The notes beneath the pieces were generated by a model. That model was given only the letters and a program-made list of their open reading frames with translations, searched no databases and was not told where the DNA came from. From assembly GCA_950097015.1 (NCBI GenBank), contig CATNEN010000008.1, forward strand, positions 372,001-436,000: a stretch of DNA of 64,000 bases, in the 5' to 3' direction. This stretch comes from Macrostomum hystrix. Lineage: Eukaryota; Animalia; Platyhelminthes. Shown piece after piece: positions 18,501-49,432 of the stretch. The number at the start of each line of letters is the position of its first letter. Position 1 is the stretch's first letter. Both the position numbers and the translations under genes were made by a program.

Positions 18501-21073
18501 TCCGGTCAATTAGATCCGCCACTCCTTGGTCAATTAGATCCTCCACTCCTTGGTCAATTAGATCCTCCACTCCTTGGTCAATTAGATCCTCCACTCCTTG
18601 GTCAATTAGATCCGCCACTCCCCAGTCAATTAGATCCGCGAGTCCTCAGTCTCACCTGAACCCAGTCACGAAGGAATATACGATGGTTCTCGGAGACAGG
18701 TGATCGCGAATCTCATCCGCCACAGTTGGCAGAGCTGCGGGCGGGCAGCACAGAAACAGCAGGTGTACTGAAGAGGCCACCTTGGCATTGTCGAATACGC
18801 AGGTTGCACCCTTGACTGTCAGATCCGCTGAAGTGAATGTGGTGTTTGATAACTAATTAACTTGTACTTTTTCATTTTTCCTACTCCTATGCCCTCTGCA
18901 AGAAACACCACCTGTTGCTCTTACAAGCCAGCTCAGGCCTTCGCGTTGAAATCTTTAACTCCTGCGGCAGCAGACCGGAGCCACGAAGCAGAAAATTGGC
19001 AAGCCGAGAGCCAAGCCGGCCGAATCCGATGATGCCTACTAGCAGGGGCTCCTTTGCCTGCGATGAGAGCAAGGACTGATTCTATTGGAGAACGCCTCAC
19101 TCGAACTTGATTTTAATTGGCTGAGTTTAGTCACGTGCTTGGTTTCCAGGATGGCTGAAAAGGGGTTTACCCCCACTAGTTCTTCTAAAAATAGCAACAG
19201 TCAGCCATCCCAAATCAGGCCGCTTTGTATAGCTTGATTGTTACGTTCTAAGAGTTTAAGTAGTCCTGTTGTGTACTTTTGCATTTGCTGTCCTACTTAT
19301 TCTACTTAGCTAAGCATCTAAGTAGCTGCTAAGTAGCTCATATGGATTGGTAAGTCACAAATTCATTGTTTACCTGCAAGTCTTTCAATAGTTTGTTGGA
19401 CAGCTTCTTGTCATTTGGGTGCAGCACCAGTAGACGGTTCTCTCTACAGGTGGATTTTAAATTATTTTATCAAAAGGTGTCATTTCAGTTCCATCGGTGA
19501 AAACTCATTCAATCAGAGGTAGGTATTCGCAATTTGGATAAAATTGATACTCGAATTGAAGCGAGTCAGACCCATTATCAGACCCTTATCAGACCCATTC
19601 TGCTGGTCGAAACTCAACTATTGGTAATTGTCTTCGGGTGTCTCATTATAATAATAACAATAATTGCAGGAGCAGTGCGAGCAGTGGCACATCATTTGAT
19701 GACACTAGACCTGCAGCCAGCGAGGAGGCAGTTCTGCCCATTTCGCTGACTCCTGAGCACACATGCACAAAGATACCGTACGCGGGCACACGCTCACACA
19801 GGTGTGTACATCTGCCCTGACTTTCTCATCGTCAGGCATCGTACACTCTCACTGTGCCTTGGAGGTTGGCCCTCAAGGGTGTAAATTGCACGACAAGCCC
19901 CCAAGCCTTCTCTCCGCGGCTGCGCCCCAAATAAATGTGGCCTCGCCGTGGAATCGAACTAGAGACCGTGGTGCGAGAGGCAAACTCGTTAACCGCTCTG
20001 CCACCGACCCCCTCGGGTGTCCAATAATGGTTGACACTAGTGCTACTATGACAAAACAATAATCGAATAACAAGCAAGGAAAAAAGCGATTTTCAATTTC
20101 TGCTTTGCTTCTATTGATGCCATTTTACTACATTGCAGTGTGCTGAAATTTAGTTTGTGTCTTTACCATTCTTTTCTTTGCGACAAAGCCTGGCGCATTA
20201 AAATGCTTTAACAATGTGAAAATGTGTTAATGAGGGACTCTAAAAGAAGTATATAGATTTTTTTATTTTACTTGACTGAGAGCAGGGTGACTGATAAATT
20301 GCTAAATATAACTTTAATTCCTTAAGTATATCTGAAGAACTTGATCTGCTATCAAAGCCCTATAAAAAACTTTAGGAACACAAAAACTGTTAAGAAGCAA
20401 AAAACTGCGATGCACAATAGAAAAAATGCCATATGAGGATTAAAATTAGTTAACCAATAATGTCAGATTAATGATAAAAGCTAAAAAGTTCCTTTTAGAC
20501 TCGGCTTGATGTGCTACCTAAATAAATTAAGGAATACAAAAACTACTAAATACAAAAAAGCACAAACATACACACCACAAAACAATGCATGTACCCATTC
20601 TGGTTACTAAAAATAGCATTTTTAAAAAGAATTTATGACTTCTGTGTATAAGTTAGACTAAGAGTTAGAATCTGCATTACAATCTGCGGATTATTAATAG
20701 TCAACCAAAAATGTCATAAATATAGGAAAACATGTTTTAGATTTTGCAGATATATGTTGCTAAAAAAGAAAAAAAATGGTATGACTTGAAAATAGCTAAA
20801 CACTTAAGTGACGAGAGCAGACAATATTTAGTAAAAGATACTAAAAAAATCATATCAATGAAATCATTTTTTAGATATGCACTTATTGCGATCGGCTTAC
20901 CGAAATTCATTTAAAGATGTGACGAAATATAAGGACTGAGCACATGCATAGTATAAAAGTGCGTGACATTTATATCGAAGATAATTTTCAGCATATTGTT
21001 CTTCTGTTAGTGCACTTTCGAATTGTACAGAGGGCAGATTTGCAGTTATGTCTGTTAAGTCAATGGTAGCCAT
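15597..21073 (-). CDS. NOXRED1: NADP-dependent oxidoreductase domain-containing protein 1 (pyrroline-5-carboxylate reductase-like)
   Basis: Exons 21073-20901, 19443-19374, 19057-18925, 18827-18656, 17967-17763, 16503-16223, 15752-15597, all phase-compatible. Motifs: DITANLPSVQFES, VGIIGFGRLG (Rossmann), LKISTRRPE, LLFLCCPP, YLPIFDLTEIS. Confidence 0.88.
15790..16110. repeat. Degenerate ~30-bp tandem repeat (CAAGTAGGGGAATCCAAGGACGATATTTC)
   Basis: About 10 diverged units in the last NOXRED1 intron. Confidence 0.8.
16540..16812 (-). mobile_element. SINE family 1, 5' head truncated
   Basis: Reverse-complement match to the 1283-1620 copy from the B box to the tail. Confidence 0.85.
16815..17725. 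repeat. 23-bp minisatellite (GGGATCGCCACTTTCCTGTATTT/CTTT), about 40 copies
   Basis: Direct tandem repetition in a NOXRED1 intron; accounts for the many overlapping repeat ORFs. Confidence 0.97.
17990..18640. repeat. 21-24-bp minisatellite (GGTCAATTAGATCCTCCACTCCTT)
   Basis: Direct tandem repetition filling almost the whole NOXRED1 intron 4. Confidence 0.97.
19643..20012 (-). mobile_element. SINE family 1, full length
   Basis: Head, body and (ATT)n tail; 9-bp target-site duplication TCGGGTGTC at 19634-19642 and 20013-20021. Confidence 0.92.
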
Positions 21074-21699
21074 GGTGAAAAATGAATAAAAAATTATAAG
21101 TTAAATTTTCACTAAGCGTTACCCACAACCATTCATGTTAACAAACAATTACAGATTGTTCAGACTACATTTTAAGCGCTAATTCAAACGTGAATGCGCT
21201 GTTATTTACTCCAAAGTCGTCAATAAATTTAACGCCGCTCTCTGGATTGAGTAGCTAGGCCAGTTCAGACTACACAAATATTTTATAGTTACAAGTGCTG
21301 CGTAATGAATTGCAATATCATTTATAATGACTTGCTGTGTATAAATGTATTCATTCAGTATCGACACCCTTGGTTTGTTGGCTTTGCCAAATTGCCATTG
21401 GCATTGGCAGTTTAACTTTGACTAGCAATAGGGAATAGCTAGCTTGCTATGCTAAAACTTATATCATATTCATAGTCATAGCTAAACTCACAGCTAGCAA
21501 GTGTTTAGAAATAAATTTTATACAAGTCTTTGTCTGCTTAAAATTAAATAAAATGTTTCTGTACAATATAAATACATAAATTATATGATTTTTTAATGAA
21601 GTGAAAAAGCATGGCATATAAAAGTTTTAGTTAAATTAGTGCTTATTTGCCACAGTACTATGCAACGAATTTGCTGACTAGTGCTATGGTACCATAGGC

Positions 21700-24600
21700 A
21701 TAGAAATAATAATGCTGGGCATAAAAAACTTGTTGTCATAAATTTACTTTAGTTCGCAAAATTTTTTTCATCCTTTAAAATGGTGCCAATGACAAGGAAT
21801 GACAAATGGGACTTGTCTATGGCCCATAGTAGCCACATAGAGTTGTTTGGGGCACAAAAATTTGGCTGAGTTTTATTGAGCCCTCACTATAGTTTGGATT
21901 TTAGAGACTTTGAGACTCTTCTGATTTGTAAATGGCTGGATGGCCCCCCGTGGATTGTGCCACCAAATGAAGTTCTGCCAGCACAGGCACTGATGGAACT
22001 AAATATGAATTCAAGGGATCTGATGGAAGTGACAGCAAGTACTGACCAGACTATATGGTGGCTCGCTTGTCATGGACTATTGGCCAACCAATGGACCTGC
22101 TTGTGTGCCGCACTTTTGGCAGCATTCTATACTGGATTTGTCATTATTACCCAGTTTAGGAATATGAGACAGTTGACTGGATTGAACTGAACTGAGCAAT
22201 GCTCAGTACGTTTAAAAATGTTTCCCACTAGTTGTGTTACCAGTTGATGTTATCTGCTTCATCGTTTAACATTTTAAAAGAAGAAAATACTTTTGCAAAC
22301 AAAAGCAAATTTACGACAACTTGTCAAATAGGCTTCAGTGTCTTTCTACATTGCCCTTATAAGTACCTAATGACCTAATGTTGCAGTAGTAAGGTCTATT
22401 TAACGAAGCACTAAATAGGCTCCAAATACTAGAAACTCTTCAATTTATAAAATGTATTATTAATTAGCTAATGAACAGATATTATCCTTTTTTTAGACAT
22501 AAATGTTAATTTATACATTATTTCTATTAGAAGCATATGTAACCTTGGATGAAATAGAAACCTTAAAAATATCAACCGTAATGTTCTTGACTTTCCTGAA
22601 TCTAAGGCCCCCTATTCATATTTGTATAATCTTCTATGTTGATAATTAGGCTTTATTGTCATAATTGCTGTGAATTAATCCATTATAGTGTTGATTGACA
22701 ATGTCCTAGTTTCTTGCATTATTTTTTACTTTCTATTATAAGCAAACAAACAAAAGCAAGTTTATTAAAAGAGTAAAACTTTGGATCTAGAGAAAACTCG
22801 TAGCGGCCTAGCATTTGAGAATCAGTGTTATAGGCCCCTATCCTAAATGTTAATTTTCCCAGTTAGTGCCCCTTAGTACCACTAATGTCCACTTTAACAG
22901 GCCCCTCACAATGCCCTCAAGCTTCTCCTTTAAAGTGTCCCTTCATAGTATCCTATTAGCAAAATGTTGATCCTTAGTACATTAGGCTTCCATAGATATG
23001 AAAAGCCAGATCTGCCACTGGCTAACTAGTTTACAATCAAAGTGTCATAGAAACTTACTTAAAAAATCATTGCTTCAGTTAAAATTTCTTATGAGTTACT
23101 TGTGTTTTTTCTTACTTATCCAAATTTCCTACAAAAAGTTATAGATTTAGTTTTCATATGTACTAAATGCATTATTGCATTTAGTATAGCATTTAAGTAT
23201 AGCAACCAAAAAGATTAAAATAATCTTAAATCAGTTTTAGTATCAAGTTATTAGACAAATGTTGCCATAACTAAGATAAGGTCATATAAGTTAAAATCTA
23301 ATCTTAGAACTTAAGCCTGATGTTTATTATTTGTACTTTTTGTGACATGTTTTCTTACTTTTTAGATCTATATTTAGTCTATATTTAGACTTAGTTTATG
23401 CAAAAGAATTCCTAAACTTTCCTAAAATATTTGATCTGAGGAATTTTTATAGGAAATCTACATGTGCATTAAAATGCTAATGAAGCAATATAGGAAAATG
23501 TAAAAAGTATACATTAACTGTAGTTTATTTTTTGTATTAGCTTAGAAAATAGTTCAAGTGAATAGACAACAGTTTCCATAGAAATAATGTAGAATATTAA
23601 TAAGTGTATCTGTAAATTATCATATTTTATGCTCACTCTTAGGCTAAAATCTATCTTCTGACCTTTTGCTATGCTAGAATTTTGTAGCATTAGGGTGGTT
23701 CTCACAGAGTTGCCACTTTTAGTGTCCAAAGTGTTTTTTTTGCCAATTTTGATTGTTTTTCATCTATTACTGCAGTATATTATATAAGCTACAGTAAAAA
23801 GTGGTTTAAAGCAGTTTTTAACACTTCATTGACAAATTCATCATTCTTCATTCAAATTCTTCATTCATCACTCATCGGATCTACACTTTTGAGGGCTGTA
23901 GATCCGATGAGTAAAACTGCTATTAAATGCAAATATTAAGGAATCCATTGGGGCTAGAATAAAGTGCCATATGTCATTAGAGACGTCTATGTACCCTTCA
24001 TAATATGATATAGCATTTGCGGTTTTACAGAATACACATTCTGAGAATTTTACATTTCCCCGACGTAGATCTGATGAGTCAAACTGCTTACTCAAAAAAA
24101 TCTGTTTTTTTACATTTTAGTTTTTCGGTAGTTGAATAGAGATAGTATGTAGTGTGCCTATAGTTTTATGAAAGCACATAAATATATATTTCGTTTGCAA
24201 GAGGATTTAGCACTGAATATGCTACCACTAATTTTTTACTGACGAATTTAGGTCAAGAGGTCTGACGTAGATCCGATGAGTTAAGTTTTGTGAGACACTT
24301 ATAAAAGCCACAAAGTAAGTAGATATAGCTGAATTATAATAGAAATTATGTTTCCTAATGCTTATTTTAGTTATATATTGCCATATAAAAGAACAACGAC
24401 GTCTTGAACACAAACGCTTTTGACAAGGGAAAGTCTTAATCTTTGACTAACATGTGTGAGACATGGTGCTTTTACAGACTTTCATGATTTCTAGTGATTT
24501 AGAAATATGTAAACAAAAGGAATTTATAACAAAGCTTTAGTGCCCTACATAGGGAAACATCGATAGAACACAAATGGTTCAACAGGACAGCTTCAAATTA

Positions 24601-25420
24601 CATTATAAAATATATTTTTTGAAAAGACACGTTTTTTCAGTACTGTGGCAATCCCGTGAGAATCACCCATTAATGCTAGCTTCCTTACTATATAATGATA
24701 TCCTTTCCTGTGGGTTAACAATCAATGATGATTTGAAGTTATTAAATCACAAGTTCTTGACATTTCTTAGTCTATCTTTTTTCAAATATGTTCATTTTGT
24801 ATATAAGTCCATGACATAGCAATTAAACATGTTTTTTATTATTTAAAACTAAAAAGTAAAGTTATAACAACTAAGATTCATAGCTGGAAGAAAGGTGGCT
24901 GAACAAGCTCAAACTAAACAATGGCAGTTTGAAATGCTTTTGAAAAGGATTCCTAAGGACCATGCTTGTAAAGTGGCTGCAAAGAAGTAAGAGGCTCAGC
25001 TGTAGCAGCAGCAGGATTTAACTAAGTGGCAGCAAGGGTACAATAGTTAAAATGAGGATGAAAGCCCAATAAATTCTGATAGATTAAAAAAGGGAGCTGC
25101 TCAATGATTTAAAAATGTCAATTGTCTGCCTATAATTTTCCATCCATTTCTGTACCCAGCCCAATATATTAGTCAGATTCAGAAATGTTGGTGTTTATCT
25201 AGGTAAGATAAATCCAGTACATTGTTGGTAAAGCAGTATCTTTCCAAAGGATTTAGTAGTGCTCAGTATGTATTCCTGTTTTGATGCAAGCCATCCTTTT
25301 TCTCACCAGCCTACTGCTAGTGTGCTATTAGTCGCTTAAATCTATGCCTTCCTATTCTTTCTTAAGAGCGTAGTACCTGGTCCCTGGTCGTGTCCTGTTG
25401 GACTCTAGAAATATATCGTG
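21700..25420. pseudogene. Heavily decayed, CpG-depleted TE-derived block
   Basis: No CpG at 22806-23875 or 24657-25332 (hand count); stop-riddled, protein-like frames. Confidence 0.5.
22005..22110 (+). mobile_element. Possible Merlin/ISXO2-like transposase N-terminal remnant
   Basis: MNSRDLMEVTASTDQTIWWLACHGLLANQWTC resembles, from memory, the W..HGLL....C N-terminus of Merlin-type transposases; no DDE core or TIR found. Confidence 0.35.
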
Positions 25421-26660
25421 GGAGAGCCCCCCCCCCCAAAGGCTGAGCCAGAGGTGTTATAGGCAATCCTGTTAATCGCCAATCGTGACATCCTGTATGA
25501 AGTCACGCATCCTGTTACTTTTTTGGTAGATGGGTTCGGTTACAGGACTGTGACACTGAGTGGGTGGCTCTCACTTTTCGTTTTGATTTTATTACTTAAT
25601 ATAGACTTTTTGCACTAAATTATTTACTATACGCTGCCCTTTTTTCATCCCAGCACAAAATTTATTTTTGCTTTCCTGCTGCAACCTAGGTTAAGTGTTT
25701 ACTGTTTACAGGTTTGCACTCGCTTCGCTCATGAGGTGATCACCAATTTTTTGCATTTAGCTCCACCTGTCTGTTGTCTGCTTCATGTGATGTCAAGCTC
25801 TCTTGTTGTTTTCGCATCAGCTATTTTTAGAATTGTCACGCCAAATGGAGGTTATCCATATTTTTGTAAGACATTGTTTGCATATATTGTAATTGCCCTC
25901 TTGCAGATGCTTTGTATATACAAATGACTGCTTGTGGGATAGTTTTGTAGTTTGCACTCCGAAATAATTACTAGCCCCAGTGTATATTAGCTATCTTCCT
26001 GACTATTTCATGTAATTCGATATGTAAAAGACATTTCGGGTTTCAAGTAGTCACGATTGGCGATTTCGGGTTTCGAGTAGTAACTAAAAGGCACTTTCGG
26101 GTCATCTATACATGTAATAGCTAGATACGAAAAAAATCTATAAATTTCTTTAAACAGAGAAATGACCTAGTATGGCTTTTTATGTAACACCAATAAGCTA
26201 GGCTACATACGGTAGATAAGAGAAGTATCTGCATGAGCCCTAGAGCCCGAATTTTATACTATTAAATGAATTTGTATAAAAAAGTAAAACTCACGGTTTT
26301 CAACCTGTGTTTTGAAACCTAGCTAGCTGTCAGTTTTAATTTAGTTGCAGGATTTCGAAAAGTAAAAGCAACATATTTTCTGCTACTACAATGAAAGATA
26401 TATTGAAATTTATCAAGGTATCTACTTATGTAGAGCTATTCAAATATATTTTTATGAAGCTTTAGCTGTATATTAAGTTGGCTTTTTTGTCATTTTCCTC
26501 TTGCCCTTATGTATTGTATTAAACTATTTATATTAGCAAACATTTCTTCGAGTCCACTTGTCTTACAAACATGTCTGATTATGCTATTGAACTGAGTCCA
26601 TGGACAAAAATTTGGCTGAAACTATATTATTTGTCTGAATTTTCTAACCATTGCAGCAAA

Positions 26661-26738
26661 ATGCGTGCAAAGTGGCGTAAGAAGAGAATGCGCAGGCTAA
26701 AGCGTAAGCGCAGGAAGATGAGGGAAAGGAGCAAGTGA
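26661..26738 (+). CDS. RPL41: 60S ribosomal protein eL41, copy A
   Basis: MRAKWRKKRMRRLKRKRRKMRERSK*; acceptor TTGCAG 4 nt before the ATG; AATAAA at about 26932. Confidence 0.96.
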   Translation: MRAKWRKKRMRRLKRKRRKMRERSK

Positions 26739-27243
26739 GGCTAGAGCTGCGATCTGCTTTCAGAGCAGACCAGCTAGCCAGCTAATGCGTGCATCGGACA
26801 AGATTGCTTCATACCGCCTGCTCGGAGTGAGATGCGTCGCTACGTCAAAAGAGAAAGCCATCGACGCGACGATTTTATATTGTACTACATCCTCTACAGA
26901 TCCCATGTCTGTACAATGTTAGATAATGCGAAATAAATCGTATTCCGTCATTCTGATGGACTTGGATAAAAAGTGGTTACTTTGAGTTTATTATTTTTTG
27001 TTATAGAATGTAGTAAGGCTCGAGTATTAGTCTATTAAGATATGCATCGATATTTTTTTATTTTCAGCCCAATTATCAGTTTTTCCCACTTTCAACGGGT
27101 GTGTACTTTTACTTCTCTAATATGCAAATAAGGCAATATTATAAGTGTATTTTGTATGTCAAGAAATAAGAGGCAATTTTGTTTTCGGTATATAGTTTAT
27201 TTCAATAAGTTACATAATAAAGTTCAGGGCATTGTTCGGCTGC

Positions 27244-28433
27244 CTATAAAAAGCCAGTCTCATATTCGTAGCCTTCTGAATGTGCGAAAACTCTTCCAAA
27301 GGTGTGCGTAGCCGCTCTGCGTTTAGTTGCCATCCAAATTGCTAGCCCTGCAGCCAGAAAGAGAATTATCATAACAATGGTGATGCCCGCAACGCCAGTG
27401 AATAAAAAATTACGCTTTAATTGCCCTTGTCCATTGTCAACATTTATTATTCCCTTGGCTCTGCACTGACCAAGCGAGTCCAGTAGTTCCTTTGATAGAT
27501 TGTTGTAGAAGTCTAATCCTTCTGCTAGATTTTTCAATGTTGACTGGCTGGCATCATCTATCGAAGCGAATGTTTGCACCATTAAAATGTACTGTAGTGC
27601 AGCACTGTGAAGCTTAATGCAGATCGGTAGAAATAGCCTCGGTTCGCAGCTAGTCCATTGCAATATTTGCTTAAATGTAACATTTTTTACTTGCTGCCTA
27701 AAATAGTAGGAAAAGGGTTTAAGTTGAGAGATATATAAATAATTATACGCGTGTCTCTACTGTCAGTAGGAGCGTAGGAACTGCTCTACTCCCACAGATT
27801 CTTTTCATTTCAAACGCTAAGCTCTAAGTAGTTCGTTCATTAGGACTTTTATCTTCTCCTTTGTATTCCACACCATGGTCCTCCACACCATGAAGGAGCC
27901 AAATATTCGCTTAGAACTTACCTAACAGTGCCACTGACTCTCTGATCCACTGCCAGACACACAATTTCCATTGCTGTATGTAGTTTTGTTTGTTCATTCC
28001 AAAATTCAAACTTGAAGTCGCTACTACCAGTCTGAGGAGTGCCAGCCAAAGCTTTGATATAGTTTTCGAATCGGAAAAAAGTGGATTCAATCTCCCTAAC
28101 AGCGTCGCTTAGCCGAGGCAGGTGTTGCAGTACCGACCTGCTAGCTGAATTTTGTAGTTGCAGGTTAATAGCGATCAGGTCTCGTAGTGTGTTGGCATTG
28201 CAACTGCTAACACTGCAGCGTGAAAAAAAGTTGCTTTTGTTGCCATGCAACAATGCACGTATCTCTGTGAGGCCTTTAGTGACGCAACTGATCTTTTCAA
28301 AGTCTGATAAGCCAGGTGCTAGCATTCCGTCGAGTTGTTGCTTTAGTTCAGCAAAGATGCACTTACATAGTGCCTCTAAGCAATTTCCCGTAGTTAGTAG
28401 CAGTAATGTTGCACAGAGAACTACTAGCTTCAT
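27244..28433 (-). CDS. Uncharacterised 321-aa type I membrane protein (X1)
   Basis: Exons 28433-27922 and 27697-27244 (AG/GTAAGT...TTTTAG, phase 2, 966 nt in total); signal peptide, Cys-containing helical ectodomain, one TM helix, short Tyr-containing tail. Confidence 0.85.
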
Positions 28434-29522
28434 GCCTGCTAAGGCCGCCTAAAAGCAAAGCTCCAATTCGATTTTCTACCTGTTCTCGGTTCGTAGAAAT
28501 GGAATGATATTTTATCCATTTTAGCCTGTGCATTTGCCAAGCCCTTAAGGTGTTTATTTAGTTGGTTGCATGTATGATCGGATCTTAGCATAAAGGTGTA
28601 TTATTTCTGTTGCACAGGAAGAGCTAGTTACAACACCTAGGCAAGCTAGTTACAGAATTTCTCTCTTACACTTGTTCTCCTACCTTAACTTTTGTGTCTT
28701 GTTTGCATATACTTTGCCAATAGTTTGTGTGGTTTGGTGTACAATTTGTGCAATAGTTGCTTTCTTATTCTCGTTCAGTTTCGTTCGCAGATATATTAAA
28801 CAGCAATGAGGCTCACGCACCTTTGTCGTAACCAATAGATTGTGGTGGTCAAAATTTCTAATGCTAATAAGCGAGCAGAAAGTTTTAATGCAGATTTGGC
28901 AGTGTCTAGCTTAGTAACATGGAATGATAATGATAGTTTTTGCTTAGCAAAAAATGTATTTGTCATCTATCAAAGAATAGCTTGATATAGTCGGATCATA
29001 ATACTATATAATATGGGTCAAGGGACCTTGGGAGTGGGTTGATAAGCGTGCACGAAGTGCTGAATCCATTTGTTAAGATTTGTATATCGTACTAGACATT
29101 ATTTGTTAAAAAATATTTTTACAATTCTACAATTTTACAGGTTTCTTGGTCCAGACGTAAGAGTAAAAAGATCAAATTTCTAAAATGAATAAGATGGTGA
29201 CAAACCATTGTAAACTTTACATAGCTATTCTTCCAGAAAAATAGCCTCAACAAAATAATGAAAAGCTCAATTAGTTTTCAATAGCAGCATCACTAAAAAC
29301 AATGCACTTTTATCATTGCGTAGTACGGATCAATAGTTATCTATTCGGGTTTTAGGAATTAAGATATTTTTCGTAGTCTAGGAGTAAATGCTTCTACTAT
29401 TTCTAACACTTCCTCATTGTCCTTAAGTGTTTAAAATCACGCTTCTTCTGCTTTAAGAAGCTTTTGTTTTTTTACAAAATATAGAATATAGAAAAGAACG
29501 TAAGCAGATGCTTTACAGTATG

Positions 29523-30614
29523 TTACGCCTCAGTCTCGTAATACCGTTTCATTAGTGGATCTTGGCCGTGATGCTCATATGACCTGCCGACGGGCTCTTC
29601 ACGCATAGTTACAGCCGGCTCCTTCTTAGATCTCCAGGCAAAGAAAGCAGTCAAAGCAATCAGAAAAACTAGAACCAAAATGAAGCAGCTGAATACGATA
29701 GCTGAATTGCGTATCGCCGAATCTTTCTCCTTGATTTCCTGCGATCTGATGGCGTGAATCTCTTTGCTGCTGCAGACAACAATCTGCTTGGTCATGCTAT
29801 CCGACAGCTTTAAGTAGTGCTTCCACTCGATCTCGCTGCTGAACTGGCTGACCGGACTGCTACCCTGTGGCGCATGCAATTCCGAATGTAGCTCCCTCAT
29901 GAACAGGAATTGCAGCACAACTCCATAGACATTCAAGTAAAATGGCAGCACTTTTGTTGTGTCGCATTTGTAATAGTCAGCGAGTCGCTCAACTATAGAC
30001 TTCGTTCTGTTGTTGCCTTCCATTGTCAATGCAAATATTGTGTCCAGTGGCTTTCCTCGCTCCATGCGCTTGTAGAATGCAGAAAAATGTGCGATTTCAT
30101 TCTCAGCCCTTATCTTTCCAGTCTTTAGTGCCGTCATGTATTCAATGAAGGCCCCGGAAAATACGTTGACAACATCGAATGTTGCACTCTGATAGTCATT
30201 CAGAAACGTGATGTGCGAGTATGCTGTAAACGATTGTTTTACCTGGCCCTTCAAGGTTTGAACTCCTTTGTCCAGTGTGTCGAAAACTGTTTCTCGGCAG
30301 CAGGCGGTGTCTTTCATGCACGAACATTTAACATCGCACTGGGCCACATTGTCCAACCAGTGTCGGACGCACTCGCGAAAGTCAGTGAAGTAACTTGTCA
30401 GTTTGAAGTTAAGCGAAATGAGTGTGTGCACAAAGCTGAAAACTTGCTCTGCATGATTGCTATTCGGCTTGTTTAAATCCTGTAGCTCTCTCGCCATCTT
30501 GCCAAAGTCGCACCAACATCGCGCGTCGTCAAGCGGTCGCAGTCTATTCTTGCTCTCAGATGTTTGCAATGTTGCTGTAGCGCATAGCAGCCATACAATA
30601 ATTCGAAGCCACAT
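29523..30614 (-). CDS. Uncharacterised 363-aa type I membrane protein (X2), paralogue of X1
   Basis: Single long ORF; signal peptide MWLRIIVWLLCATATLQTS, TM AIVFSCFILVLVFLIALTAFFAW; conserved blocks shared with X1. Confidence 0.88.
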   Translation of the reverse strand: MWLRIIVWLLCATATLQTSESKNRLRPLDDARCWCDFGKMARELQDLNKPNSNHAEQVFSFVHTLISLNFKLTSYFTDFRECVRHWLDNVAQCDVKCSCMKDTACCRETVFDTLDKGVQTLKGQVKQSFTAYSHITFLNDYQSATFDVVNVFSGAFIEYMTALKTGKIRAENEIAHFSAFYKRMERGKPLDTIFALTMEGNNRTKSIVERLADYYKCDTTKVLPFYLNVYGVVLQFLFMRELHSELHAPQGSSPVSQFSSEIEWKHYLKLSDSMTKQIVVCSSKEIHAIRSQEIKEKDSAIRNSAIVFSCFILVLVFLIALTAFFAWRSKKEPAVTMREEPVGRSYEHHGQDPLMKRYYETEA

Positions 30615-31344
30615 TGTTTGGTATGCGGCGCTGGTATGAAAGCCTTTCTATTAGATCGGCTAGCAATTTTGCGTGAGTAGAAGGCTCATAGCACCTGATT
30701 TTTATCTAAATTGAAAAATCTGTTCTCGACCCTATCCGTCGTTATCTCTACTTAGCACTTAGTCATTATGTGGTGTACATTTTCGCAGGGTGTGCTCACT
30801 GCTCACTCGTGCGCTCGTTGGTTCAATCTAGAAAACAGCCAAGCCATTTTCTTCACTTCTTTCGCCTGTCTCCGCCTAGCTATGCATGGCCAATCTGCTT
30901 TTAGAATCATTTTTGAAGGAATAGAAGACAGCTAAAATTCGAATGGCCCCTGATTTTGCCCTTGAGACACACACCATTGCTATCTTTATTCTGCGTATAA
31001 TCTCCCGAATTCTCAGGCAGAGTTTTAGCTGCGTATTTTACTTGCGAATCTACTCACTATTCTTCAAAAATTTCAATTGCTTAGTCTGCTGACGTATCTG
31101 TAATGTAGTGCCGTTGTCATTTTCAATTTTCGCAAGTGTGATAGAAATTTTAGCAAATCAGCATATGCGTTTAGACGAGTTATTAGGAGATAAAAGTATA
31201 GGTAATAGCTGTTGCGTGCGACATAGAAACCGGTTTAATCCAAGATCCTGCAAAGACGGCAACAATCACCCAAATTTCTACCCCAAGCTAATGCCGGTTT
31301 TAATTTTACATCTGGGCGATTTTACATTAGGATGTTAATTACTT

Positions 31345-31412
31345 TGCTCAAGAACTCGAATTCGAACTCCAGACCTCGTTAGAAGTATGAAAGCTATAAC
31401 CACTAGACTACA
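31345..31412 (-). mobile_element. tRNA-like SINE head remnant
   Basis: Reverse complement GGAGACTGTAGTCTAGTGGTTATAG...GAGTTCGAATTC has A and B boxes but no paired acceptor stem. Confidence 0.5.
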
Positions 31413-31760
31413 GTCTCCATATGTATTCTGCCTGTGCTAAGTTTTGTAAAGTTTTCGCCACCCACATTCCCTTGACTTGAAATACTCGGAGGTGCGCATC
31501 CATTTCGCTGGCTTCCATAAAAAACTAATCACCGGTTCAAGACTTTCGGAGGTATCACGTTTCCCTGAACTTTTTCCCTGCTAACCAGCTTTATATGTTA
31601 GTTTTTATATAAAGCTTAGTTTATTCTTGTTTACTAAATGCTCTAAAATTTTAAACAATACTAAATCTATATATAGGTACACAGCAGGTGATAGCGCTTT
31701 ATGTTACAAATATTGTCTAAATTGCTTTGTTTTCTATCATGAAATTCCAGCACTAAAGCC

Positions 31761-31838
31761 ATGCGAGCCAAGTGGCGTAAGAAGCGAATGAGGCGACTAA
31801 AGCGCAAACGCAGGAAGATGAGGGAAAGGAGCAAGTAA
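31761..31838 (+). CDS. RPL41: 60S ribosomal protein eL41, copy B
   Basis: Same 25-aa protein as copy A; acceptor TTCCAG 10 nt before the ATG. Confidence 0.96.
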   Translation: MRAKWRKKRMRRLKRKRRKMRERSK

Positions 31839-33468: not shown

Positions 33469-36400
33469 ATGTCAGCCACTTGGGATGAGATTCGCGGCTT
33501 GGCCGCCGATTTACAGCGGGTGCAGCTGAGTAGCGCCAAGCAGCGCCTAACTGAGCGCAACTGCATTGAAATTGTTCAACGCCTCACCCAAATGGGCCTC
33601 ATTAAATTAGTTTACACCTGCGATGGCAAGGCTTTCCTAACTGAGGCCGAACTGGCCAAGGAGATCCTCGAAGAGCTGGAGCTGCGCCAGCATCGCGTCA
33701 ATGTTGTCGCCCTACAGGAGGCTCTGAACATTGATCTGGGTACTGTGGAGCAGCGAGTTCGCGATCTAGTCAAATCTGATCCCGAGCTGCATCTAGTCAA
33801 TGGCGAATTCATGCACGAAGCCTATTTTCGTCGAGTCGCGCACGAGGTTAACGAGGCCCTATACGAACGCGGTCACGTGACCCTCGGAGAGTTGACCAAA
33901 GCGCACGGCCTACCAACCCAGACTCTGCTCTCCATTGTTCGCCAGTATCTGGGCACCGTCATTCAGGGCAGCCTGGAGGAGGACGCTCTGTTCACCGATC
34001 GCTACCTGCGTAGGCATCGGGCCAGAGTGCGCGGCTGCTTCAACGCCGCCATAAAGCCAATCACTGTGCAGCAGGCGGCTGGCCAATTGAAAATGCCCGA
34101 GAGGCTGTTGCGCAATGTGCTGGACGAATTGCACACCGCCGGCGAGCTGCGGGGCGTCTTTCAGGTTAGCTGAATTTCGTTTGAAAATACTGTAAAGCGT
34201 GTAGAAAACGAAAGATAAGCCTTCGCAATCGACTGTCCGAGTATTGGAATTTAGGCATTAGAAAGCATTGGTTTAACACACGAAGTTTGTATGTAAATAG
34301 TAGAAATGTACACGATTTTTTTCAATTCCACTGTTGGTAGCACGAAAAAGAAAAACTATTTATTTAGCAAACTATTTAAACTGTTAAATAAAACACTGCA
34401 GGGCGGCAAGTCCACCTACGTGCCGGCCTCGTTCAGCGTGGCTCACGACGATTGGATTCGCCAATTCTACGCCCAGAATCAGTACATGGAGCTCGAGGCT
34501 GTGCGCCGCTGCGGCCTTGTTGCTGAACCCAAAGCCTATCTGCGGCGCCTGCTAGGCGAGAAAGGCAACGAGCCGCTGGTGCTCAAGACTTGCATAGTTA
34601 GTTCCGATGTTGCCGCCGGCTTGGAGGCTGCGCTCGATGGCGTGCGCTGGCTGGACATCAGCCAGGCCCTGACTGTCCCGCTGACAGATGCCGATATTGA
34701 TGCGCTGCTTAGTCCGATGCTAGGTGAGTGAGCAACTGATTAACAGTAGACAGACCACGCTATTTTCCTCTGGGGAAAGACAACGTGGGTATTTCGAAGG
34801 TCCACGATATGGATCAACTAAATTTTTAAGCCTTCCGAAGTCAGCATCGTCGAGATATTCAGCAATTCTTGTCGAAGACCCTACTGACAATGCCAACTTA
34901 AATAGCATATATCCATATATCCATAAATTATAAATATAATAAATACAGTATAATCAACAATAATAGCCGAATTGGATACATGATAAAAGCAGAAAAAAAT
35001 GACTATATATAGTATTGGTGATTTTTGCCACCAGAATTTTTAAATACCTTGACGATGCCGATGTTTTGTCGGAGACTCATAGCCAGAGTCTCCGCTGCTG
35101 AATTTATAGACCATCCAACTAGATCAGCATGTGTAATTCAGTTTGAACTCCAGCAGGCTTGAATGATGATTAGGATTAAAGTCCACCCGGTCCGCAGGTT
35201 CTCGCCCAGACCTGGCCCAGGTAGCCGGGCACTATTTAATCAGCCGGAAATGGCTAGCCGATCTGTGCCAATCGTTTGATCAGTTTTTAAACGAGCGCGC
35301 CGAATCACTAGTTAAAGCCGATCCTAGCCTACTGCAGCAGCATCAGCAGAGGCGTCAGCCGCATCCAGACGTTGGCAGCGCCGACGCCGCCGACGATGAC
35401 GCTGGGGGCGGCGCTTTTGGCGGCCCAGTTGGCAAGATCAAATCCGGCGGTGGCACGCAGGGACGCGAAATCAAATTAAAAAGCACGAAAAATAAATACG
35501 CTGCCGGTAGGTCGGCCAACAAGGCTAACAAAGCCACCGAGTCGGCCAAGGATGTCGACAAAGAAGCTTCTTTGACCTCAATCAGCCTGTCTGACGTGTC
35601 TAGCCGACTGCGGGAGGCCCTGGAAAAACAGGAGGAAGCCGCCGGTGGGGTCGGCTGCGGAGAATCGTCGGTCAATGACGATCTAATCGAAGCCGTGTTT
35701 GAACTCATGTCGCCTGCCCTCAATGCCAGTCTGCAGAATCGGCTGGGCAGCGCTCTGACAGCCGATTCGGCCAACAAGCGCCAAGCAACTAGCGCCTGTC
35801 AGGCCCGCGCCGCCTCTCTTGTCAAACAGATGCGCCTATTTGAACGCGGTGCCGCTGCTTTGGGCGACGCCGATCTGCAGTCTGCGTTAAATAAACACCT
35901 GGCTAAATCTTTGGGCGCCTCTCTGATGTGCACCCTGTTGGAATATGCCGCCCTGAGCTGCGGCCTCGACGACTGCGCTAAACTGGCCGCATCGGCTGCC
36001 ATCACCGGCGGTATGACTGGCGATCAGCGCCAAAGACTCGTTGAACAGCTGCCGCCTGGGCAAGATCGCGACTGGCTAACGCTTATTAATTTGGCTCTGA
36101 GTGGCGACTCCATGGAGAAGGTAAATATATGCTTATTCCTAACCCGGTTTTGTTAGACACTTTTGTACTAACTAGGGTGGAGATAACAGCTGATCATTCG
36201 AGGATGGGGATAACAGCCAATCATTCCAGTAGGGAAATAACACCCAAGCATTCCCGGGATATGAATAGCAGGTGATCTCTCCAGTAGGGAAATAACACCC
36301 AAGCATTCCCGGCATGGGGATAACAGGTGATCTCCTAAATAGGGAAAAACATCCAAGCATTCCCGGGATGGGGATAACAGTGATCTCTCTAATAGGGAAA

Positions 36401-37203
36401 TAACATCCAAGCATTCCCGGGATGGGGATAACAGGTGATCTCTCTAATAGGGAAATAACATCCAAGCATTCCCGGGATATGAATAGCAGGTGATCTCTCC
36501 AGTAGGGAAATAACACCCAAGCATTCCCGGCATGGGGATAACAGGTGATCTCTACAATAGGGAAAAACATCCAAGCATTCCCGGGATGGGGATGGCAGGT
36601 GATCTCTCCAGTAGGGAAATAACACCCAAGCATTCCCGGCATGGGGATAATAGGTGATCTCTACAATAGGGAAAAAACATCCAAGCATTCCCGGGATGGG
36701 GATAACAGCTAATCAACCACAAAGGTATTACAACTGCTGTCATTGATTATTGTGCATCAATCACGTTTAGCGAGCAATCGGTGCGAATGAAATTTCAGAT
36801 ACACTCCCACGTAGACGGCATGTGCAATCGCCTGGGCCTTCTATTAAAGCCAGCCGATAAGAAGGCCGAGAAGGTTCTTTGCGCTGAAACTGCAGCTCGC
36901 CTAGTTGACTCCCTGGACTCAGCCGAGCCTGAGCTAGCCCTCCTAGTGACCGTCTCCCTGCTAGTACAGGCCTGCACTGGCATCCCCATTCACGCTCCGG
37001 GTCGATCTGTGCCTCAGCTAATCAATTACCTGCGCAATAATCGGCTGCGCGATTCGTCCGCCTGCGAACTGCTGCAATCCGCCCAGGAGCTGGTGGTCCG
37101 GCGGGCCAAGCGAGACGAAACCGTTGGCGCCGAGATTGAGGCTGTTTTCCCGTGCATTGTGGAATTAGGCAAATCTTGGAAAGCTGCGGCCGCTAAAAAG
37201 TGA
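33469..37203 (+). CDS. UFL1: E3 UFM1-protein ligase 1
   Basis: Exons 33469-34164, 34402-34723, 35198-36120, 36799-37203. Motifs: MSATWDEIRGLAADLQRVQLS..QRLTERNCIEIV, GGGTQGREIK, IHAPGRSVPQLI. Confidence 0.95.
34760..34930 (+). mobile_element. Dispersed repeat family 3 fragment
   Basis: Similar to the reverse complement of 54270-54500 (e.g. AGTCAGCATCGTCGAGATATTCAGCAATTCTTGTCGAAGACCCT vs AGTCAGTATCGTCGAGACGTTCAGCGATTCTAGTCGAAGACCCT). Confidence 0.65.
36175..36712. repeat. ~55-bp minisatellite (GGGATAACAGGTGATCTCTCCAGTAGGGAAATAACACCCAAGCATTCCCGGGATG), about 10 copies
   Basis: Direct tandem repetition in UFL1 intron 3. Confidence 0.95.
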
Positions 37204-37825: not shown

Positions 37826-39439
<1,614 letters not shown>

Positions 39440-48824: not shown

Positions 48825-49432
48825 CCTCCCCTCAGGTTGGTCTAGAGTGACAGTCACCCATCCCCTCAGGTTGGTCCAGTGTGACAGTCACCCATCCCCT
48901 CAGGTTGGTCTAGTGTGACAGTCGCACATCCCCTCAGGTTGGTCTAGTGTGACAGTCACACATCCCCTCAGGTTGGTCTAGTGTGACAGTCACACATCCC
49001 CTCAGGTTGGTCTAGTGTCACAGTCACACATCCCCTCAGGTTGGTCTAGTGTGACAGTCGCACATCCCCTCAGGTTGGTCTAGTGTGACAGTCACACATC
49101 CCCTCAGGTTGGTCTAGAGTGACAGTCACCCCTCCCCTCAGGTTGGTCTAGAGTGACAGTCACCCATCCCCTCAGGTTGGTCTAGTGTGACAGTCACACA
49201 TCCCCTCAGGTTAGTCTAGTGTGACAGTCACACATCCCCTCAGGTTAGTCTAGTGTGACAGTCACACATCCCCTCAGGTTGGTCTAGTGTGACAGTCACA
49301 CATCCCCTAAGGTTGGTCTAGAGTGACAGTCACCCATCCCCTCAGGTTGGTCTAGTGTGACAGTCACACATCCCCTCAGGTTAGTCTAGTGTGACAGTCA
49401 CACATCCCCTCAGGTTGGTCTAGTGTGACAGT
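48825..49432. repeat. 34-bp minisatellite (ATCCCCTCAGGTTGGTCTAGTGTGACAGTCACAC), about 18 copies
   Basis: Direct tandem repetition upstream of SNM1A. Confidence 0.97.

Follow-up and report, generated by a model that had tools for sequence, protein, structure and literature searches.

Two neighbouring open reading frames (ORFs) on a contig of the flatworm Macrostomum hystrix raise the question of whether they are genes and, if so, whether their products belong to a known family of toxins. They lie on the minus strand at positions 27244 to 30614 of a stretch of 64,000 nucleotides (GenBank assembly GCA_950097015.1, contig CATNEN010000008.1, positions 372,001 to 436,000 of the forward strand), which is called the window in the following; the two frames are called X1 and X2. 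The original prediction described them as a tandem pair of novel type I membrane proteins with a rapunzel/cephalotoxin-like helical ectodomain. Our analysis supports the novel type I pair with helical ectodomains; it does not support membership in the rapunzel/cephalotoxin families at the level of hidden Markov model (HMM) profiles.

Both predicted reading frames were recovered at their predicted positions on the minus strand. The features of the two genes are listed below. P0003 is a protein from Macrostomum lignano, and A1 is an alignment of five rows (X2, two M. lignano relatives and two paralogues from the M. hystrix genome) that contains no X1-type sequence.

27096..28509, minus strand: extent of the X1 mRNA, given by the outermost ends of transcript contigs among three runs.
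27922..28433, minus strand: X1 coding exon 1, with the ATG at 28433, the signal peptide, the CKCIF motif and the N-terminal helices; it ends in AG, followed by GTAAGT. The exon is based on the ORF, the splice site, spliced transcript contigs from three runs and 52% identity to P0003.
27698..27921, minus strand: X1 intron of 224 nt, GT..AG, phase 2.
27244..27697, minus strand: X1 coding exon 2 including the stop codon, with an NVT sequon, the conserved hydrophobic helix CEPRLFLPICIKLHSAALQYILM, the motif Y..LS..C..K.I, the transmembrane (TM) helix and a tail that ends in YEYETGFL. The exon is 44% identical to P0003 and is matched by the X2-only profile A1 (E 0.026).
27328..27405, minus strand: X1 TM helix LFTGVAGITIVMIILFLAAGLAIWMA, followed by TKRR; the Kyte-Doolittle mean over 19 residues (KD19) peaks at 2.77.
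29523..30614, minus strand: X2 coding sequence including the stop codon, one exon, 363 amino acids; based on the ORF, transcript contigs and 76% identity to M. lignano BOX15_Mlig015559g2.
30504..30518, minus strand: CWCDF motif of X2, residues 33-37, directly after the signal peptide; seen in the alignments A1 and A2.
29877..29960, minus strand: conserved hydrophobic helix TKVLPFYLNVYGVVLQFLFMRELHSELH of X2, residues 219-246; based on AlphaFold2 (AF2), KD19, hhalign and BLASTP.
29631..29699, minus strand: TM helix of X2, residues 306-328, followed by RSKK; KD19 peak 3.01 and AF2 secondary structure.
28878..29522, minus strand: X2 3' untranslated region (UTR) of ~650 nt, from transcript-contig coverage.

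The X1 product has 321 amino acids and is encoded by two minus-strand exons, whose donor (AG/GTAAGT) and acceptor (ttttag/G) were read directly from the sequence. Logan transcript contigs from three public runs of one study skip this intron exactly and join 27696/27697 to 27921/27922 (one contig per run: X3, X4 and X5); the skipped piece reads CT..AC on the plus strand, which is GT..AG on the minus strand. In these runs X1 is covered by single transcript pieces of 1.1 kb. X2 is covered by separate contigs of 1.5-1.8 kb, which extend from 28878/28897 to 30655-30680, and the intergenic stretch between the two genes (28524-28770) has no contig coverage in any of the three runs. Logan contigs give neither strand nor expression level, and these three runs carry no tissue label. 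Since the spliced form of X1 and the uncovered intergenic DNA occur in the same runs, the contigs are transcript assemblies; it follows that X1 and X2 are transcribed as separate mRNAs and that the X1 intron is confirmed. Hence, both frames are real genes, each with a transcript of its own.

The 5' end of X2 stands head to head with the gene for ribosomal protein eL41 (30673-31838, plus strand; coding exon 31761-31838), which has a canonical plus-strand intron from 30673 (GTGAGT) to 31750 (..CCAG). The non-coding first exon of eL41 ends at 30672 and thus overlaps in antisense with the 5' end of X2, the ATG of which is at 30614. In one Logan contig, which is unstranded, the two overlapping mRNAs are joined. 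A candidate 5' UTR exon of X2 at 31751-31780 was rejected, because this piece belongs to eL41 on the opposite strand.

Direct comparison of the two proteins finds 16-22% identity. BLASTP aligns X1 exon 2 with the C-terminal half of X2 (E 1e-4, 19% identity over 143 residues), and from X1 exon 1 the CxCxF stretch alone aligns with X2 (E 0.05); hhalign gives a probability of 14% for the X2-family alignment against X1 exon 2. The shared motifs of the original prediction were all found and are collinear (CKCIF/CWCDF; C[ED]..LP..LQ[YF][IL][LF]M; Y..LS..C..K.I). An HMM of A1, when searched against 1.84 billion representative proteins, returned the cluster of X2 and of its paralogue C2 from contig 2 (P0002) plus one other protein, P0003, with E 1.1e-5 (profile positions 194-334 on residues 166-304). 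P0003 is BOX15_Mlig004256g1 of M. lignano and the orthologue of X1, with E values of 7e-44 for the 52% identity of exon 1 and 4e-41 for the 44% identity of exon 2. Among six-frame ORFs the same profile matched the M. lignano X1 orthologue in exon 1, at the N-terminal CxCxF region (E 0.002-0.005), and collinear with it in exon 2 (E 4e-8); within the window, its best non-self match was X1 exon 2 (E 0.026). In the opposite direction, an HMM of X1-type sequences only matched C2 near end to end (profile positions 24-290, E 3.7e-8 in a small database). These reciprocal matches indicate that X1 and X2 are homologous over their whole length, and they settle the distant paralogy that had been predicted: judged by their profiles, the two genes are ancient tandem duplicates, true but very distant paralogues.

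The search for further members covered 220,453,370 bases in 42 contigs of the M. hystrix genome. This count gave four family genes, namely X1 and X2 on contig 8 and one gene each on contigs 2 and 39:

Contig 2, 1241053-1242156: paralogue C2, X2-type, 56-57% identity.
Contig 39, 2294818-2295948: paralogue C39, X2-type, 26-29% identity.

Three of the four genes (X2, C2 and C39) are therefore X2-type. Searches of the genome with each X1 exon gave self matches only, so that X1 is unique there, and the A1 profile found the three family loci and one noise match (E 7.4), nothing more. Six-frame HMM scans detected no extra member in the window, in the two M. lignano loci or in ~10 kb on either side of C2 and C39; no X1-like gene occurs within ~10 kb of C2 or C39. 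Just downstream of C39 (512-1336 of L003, contig 39) a unit of 11 codons is repeated in tandem, almost without change, over a long stretch; one of its frames reads CLTASTVLQPV. Several frames of the repeat are open, on both strands, and it resembles a minisatellite more than a gene.

Beyond Macrostomum, no relatives were found in libraries of 5.8 billion and 1.84 billion sequences, which returned only hypothetical proteins from M. lignano. Word searches with P0003 and with the C39 paralogue gave no further relatives, and no C39-type orthologue was found in the sequence libraries. As judged from these searches, the genes form a small family that has been found so far only in the genus Macrostomum. 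The M. lignano proteins BOX15_Mlig015559g2, BOX15_Mlig025998g3 and BOX15_Mlig004256g1 have the same architecture as the M. hystrix proteins and are 76% identical to X2, 57% to the contig 2 type and 44-52% to X1, respectively. They are hypothetical proteins without a Pfam domain, and in M. lignano the gene copies are duplicated (homeologous), unlike in M. hystrix. The order UFL1, X2-type, X1-type is present on two M. lignano contigs (L009 and L010), which presumably are homeologues; it matches the order X1, X2, (eL41), UFL1 of the window, where UFL1 (E3 UFM1 ligase) lies at 33469-34731 on the plus strand. Since M. lignano has a separate orthologue for X1, for X2 and for the contig 2 type, the duplications are older than the split of the two species. 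The annotation of two of the M. lignano genes deserves a remark. P0001, the orthologue of X2, is labeled partial and begins 26 residues before the Met at which translation is likely to start. The X1 orthologue (L009 10001-11272, plus strand) is annotated with an intron of 297 nt in phase 0, whose place in the protein roughly matches that of the 224-nt, phase-2 intron of X1; either the intron has shifted or there is a small error in the annotation of M. lignano.

All members of the family share one architecture. An N-terminal hydrophobic, signal-like segment is followed by a helical ectodomain, one TM helix and a tail. The TM helix forms a single hydrophobic peak, with a KD19 of 2.8-3.4 and K/R immediately after it; the signal peptide, single TM helix and short tail of the original prediction are borne out in this way. 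The ectodomain has 260-285 residues, with about six long helices predicted, and holds 8-10 Cys per member. Conserved among these are the second Cys of CxC, a Cys-rich loop, one Cys directly before the conserved hydrophobic helix and one in the stalk. The second Cys and the Phe of CWCDF (C35 and F37 of X2) are invariant in the five A1 rows, which comprise X2-, C2- and C39-type proteins, and occur in X1-type proteins as well. A sequon at N202 of X2, in the loop before the conserved hydrophobic helix, is likewise invariant in these five rows, and X1-type proteins have a sequon in about the same loop. The tails of X1-, X2- and C2-type proteins have ~35 residues and end in [YH]YE[TS][DEG] (KRYYETEA, YEYETGFL and KRYYETDETV). 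With a signal peptide, one TM segment, a positive-inside flank and an ectodomain that bears Cys and N-x-S/T sites, each protein has the features of a type I single-pass membrane glycoprotein and probably is one; cleavage of the signal peptide is suggested by the N-terminal hydrophobic peak. The conserved Cys columns point to putative disulfides, which would brace the ectodomain.

The segment that is best conserved between X1- and X2-type proteins is residues 219-246 of X2 (LPFYLNVYGVVLQFLFM). Its equivalent ranks first or second in hydrophobicity after the TM helix in every member, when the signal segment is left aside, and has a KD19 of 0.95-1.55, which is under the TM threshold. A helix that is hydrophobic yet stays below TM level fits a buried core helix. 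We considered a second TM helix at this position and rejected it on account of these KD19 values and the conserved flanking Cys; in addition, K, H, Q, R or E occur in this helix in X1-type and C39-type proteins.

The structure of X2 was modelled with AF2 from an alignment of nine rows, and the X1-type fold was modelled on the M. lignano orthologue P0003, standing in for X1. The X2 model (mean predicted local distance difference test, pLDDT, 73.8; predicted template modelling score, pTM, 0.65) is all-helical, with long helices at residues 54-92, 107-131, 136-165, 167-197, 219-246 and 261-330; in the last of these, the final ectodomain helix, or stalk, continues through the membrane without a break. 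Confidence is low in the Cys-rich loop (91-105), the signal peptide region and the tail. The P0003 model is also all-helical and is weaker (pLDDT 61.6, pTM 0.51). Neither model contains strands, and the almost all-helical ectodomain that had been predicted from sequence is thus reproduced by modelling.

A structure search with these helical models produced no confident relative. With neither model did Foldseek give a PDB match at E<=0.001 (best E 0.05 and 0.18, TM-scores <=0.35), a shape search of the ESM Atlas stayed at TM<0.3, and ESM Atlas feature searches with the whole protein and with residues 36-300 against named clusters were empty. The top matches of the X1-type model in VIA-align overlap those of X2 and include delta-latroinsectotoxin, Killer B, Cry8Ea1, Cry8Ba2, Cry11Aa, Vip3Cb1 and FARP DH domains. 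The matched ranges of the toxins are the helical-bundle domain of latrotoxin, domain I of Cry and domain II of Vip3. On the basis of these models, the ectodomain may weakly resemble toxin helical bundles in shape.

At the sequence level, the register that the original prediction had proposed between X2 and rapunzel or SE-cephalotoxin (SE-CTX) found no support, as no profile match appeared among the 1.84e9 proteins or in the M. hystrix genome. The HMMER search with A1 returned only the family members P0002 and P0003. Pfam scans of X2, of both X1 exons and of all members gave only sub-threshold noise from the TM helix. A sequence profile search of the PDB at E<=10 found nothing and no Cry chain, and Endotoxin_N was absent from the hmmscan results of the window proteins (E<=10) and of the eight rows in alignment A3 (E<=1). 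There was no rapunzel or SE-CTX chain among the PDB matches; we know of no solved structure of either protein.

The comparison of evolutionary rates across species, which had been proposed together with the prediction, shows that pN (non-synonymous differences) is below pS (synonymous differences) for both genes. Between M. hystrix and M. lignano, pN is 0.13 and pS 0.82 for X2, and the respective values are 0.32 and 0.72 for X1, with the synonymous sites saturated at this distance (pS 0.72-0.82). The two M. lignano X2-type copies (homeologues) have a dN/dS of 0.11. Because pN is well below pS, both X1 and X2 are under purifying selection. Non-synonymous change is ~2.5 times faster in X1 than in X2; identity to the M. 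lignano orthologue is 47% for X1 and 76% for X2, with 83-91% for the neighbouring UFL1 as a baseline. The rapid divergence of X1 after the duplication, next to a fairly conserved X2, suggests that X1 has a different or co-evolving partner.

Together, these results are best described by a lineage-specific receptor or adhesion molecule of the cell surface or the secretory pathway. We assign this reading a probability of roughly 0.55, with high confidence in the architecture and low confidence in the function. The helical bundle would be a binding module shown on the cell surface or in the lumen of the secretory pathway, where it would bind a partner; the conserved acidic-tyrosine tail would couple the bundle to sorting or to phosphotyrosine signalling. 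X1 and X2 would then be lineage-specific receptors or adhesion molecules, not secreted toxins. Three observations weigh against this picture. The tail of the C39-type protein is much longer, has a different sequence and is without the YYET-type motif; the tail motif itself matches neither a classical YxxPhi nor an NPxY signal; and the two AF2 alignments hold only 8-9 sequences each and share rows, so that the agreement of the models is not independent. In the full texts and the supplements of PMC10468722 that the search covered, the Mlig gene numbers had no match.

Several other explanations have to be weighed against a receptor or adhesion molecule. X1 and X2 might be chance ORFs or pseudogenes without a function as genes, as they have no known domain and their homologues are confined to one genus. 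This is hardly credible in view of the spliced transcripts in three runs, the intact M. lignano orthologues in conserved synteny, a pN far below pS and the same coherent architecture in four paralogues. An unlikely alternative is that the proteins serve reproduction or self/non-self recognition on gametes or reproductive tissues, in sperm-egg contact, in the interaction of sperm with the female tract or in allorecognition, with X1 evolving fast under sexual conflict. The low identity of X1 to its M. lignano orthologue relative to X2 and UFL1, and the restriction of the family to one genus, speak for it, as does the report that reproduction-related genes of Macrostomum evolve fast and escape homology detection (PMC10468722). 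However, pN is well below pS in both genes, with no sign of gene-wide positive selection. It is rather improbable that X1 and X2 need each other as the two chains of a single heteromeric complex at the surface. The pair has been adjacent and in the same orientation since before the species split, on both homeologous M. lignano contigs; the genes are transcribed in the same samples, and X1 and X2 have the tail motif in common. Yet adjacency alone is weak evidence, and C2 and C39 lack an X1-like neighbour, which implies that an X2-type gene need not have an X1-type gene linked to it. A complex prediction for the ectodomain plus TM helix of the X2-type and X1-type proteins of M. lignano gave a score of 0.00; with the fold of the partner uncertain, this counts neither way.

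Equally improbable is a membrane-tethered bundle like that of pore-forming toxins, a true structural relative of the latrotoxin bundle and of Cry domain I and possibly also of the rapunzel/SE-cephalotoxin helical domain. Its conserved hydrophobic helix would insert into an apposed membrane or into its own, for defence, cell killing, fusion or channel formation. Such bundles are among the VIA-align matches; the searches of sequence profiles and of the PDB found no such relative. If the weak likeness to the latrotoxin/Cry bundle were real, the family would provide the first case of an animal protein that is tethered to the membrane and consists of this module alone, and this would bear on the origin and reuse of pore-forming bundles. 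A more specific form of this idea, which we regard as a long shot, is an animal-encoded, membrane-anchored shielded-helix bundle of the latrotoxin/Cry type that is opened by a trigger, such that the hydrophobic helix is driven into an apposed membrane. It could be aimed at prey, pathogens, gametes or neighbouring cells, and X1 and X2 would possibly be paired; were this true, it would be a so far unknown class of tethered membrane-insertion or fusion device.

Some features of the surroundings complete the description of the locus. X1 and X2 are in an AT-rich block (20001-30000, 31-40% G+C), which is flanked by DNA with 45-58% G+C. On the far side of UFL1 there is a beta-tubulin gene with several exons (37841-39439, plus strand). 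An ORF with repeated PGMLGCYFP.GEITC units (36172-36642, minus strand) is probably a tandem repeat. The same is probably true of ~48900-49320, where a run of 25-residue ORFs with a spacing of 34 nt appeared as noise in the HMM scan.

X1, X2 and their relatives are a well-supported orphan family, of a kind that is common in flatworm genomes. The analysis provides a clean gene model for X1 with a transcript-confirmed intron, and homology is shown for two genes with almost no pairwise similarity. It also defines a four-gene family with orthologues in M. lignano, a species tractable by RNA interference (Mlig015559, Mlig025998 and Mlig004256), and it removes an unsupported toxin-family label.

The comparison with known systems shows how this family differs from those with which it was compared. 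The likeness to rapunzel and SE-cephalotoxin that had been proposed consists only of a helical, Cys-bearing extracellular domain. SE-CTX is a toxin secreted from the salivary gland, whereas the X1/X2 family consists of membrane proteins of 320-410 residues with a TM segment and a cytoplasmic tail. Rapunzel-like and SE-CTX-like sequences match each other by BLAST at ~1e-70 (PMC6315956), and the biochemical function of SE-cephalotoxin is itself unknown (PMC4986456). The bundle of latrotoxin has been likened to Cry domain I, with a hydrophobic central helix shielded by amphipathic helices (PMC8630228). In latrotoxin the bundle is followed by a plug domain and ankyrin repeats, a layout that the X1/X2 family does not have. 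In Cry delta-endotoxins, the beta-rich domains II and III come after the helical bundle, whereas the X1/X2-type models are without strands and the ectodomain ends in a TM helix. No Bcl-2 structure occurred among the structural matches listed. The Bcl-2 family nevertheless offers a conceptual precedent, since it combines a toxin-like helical bundle and central hydrophobic helices with a C-terminal TM anchor; unlike the X1/X2 family, Bcl-2 proteins are cytosolic and tail-anchored, with neither signal peptide nor disulfides.

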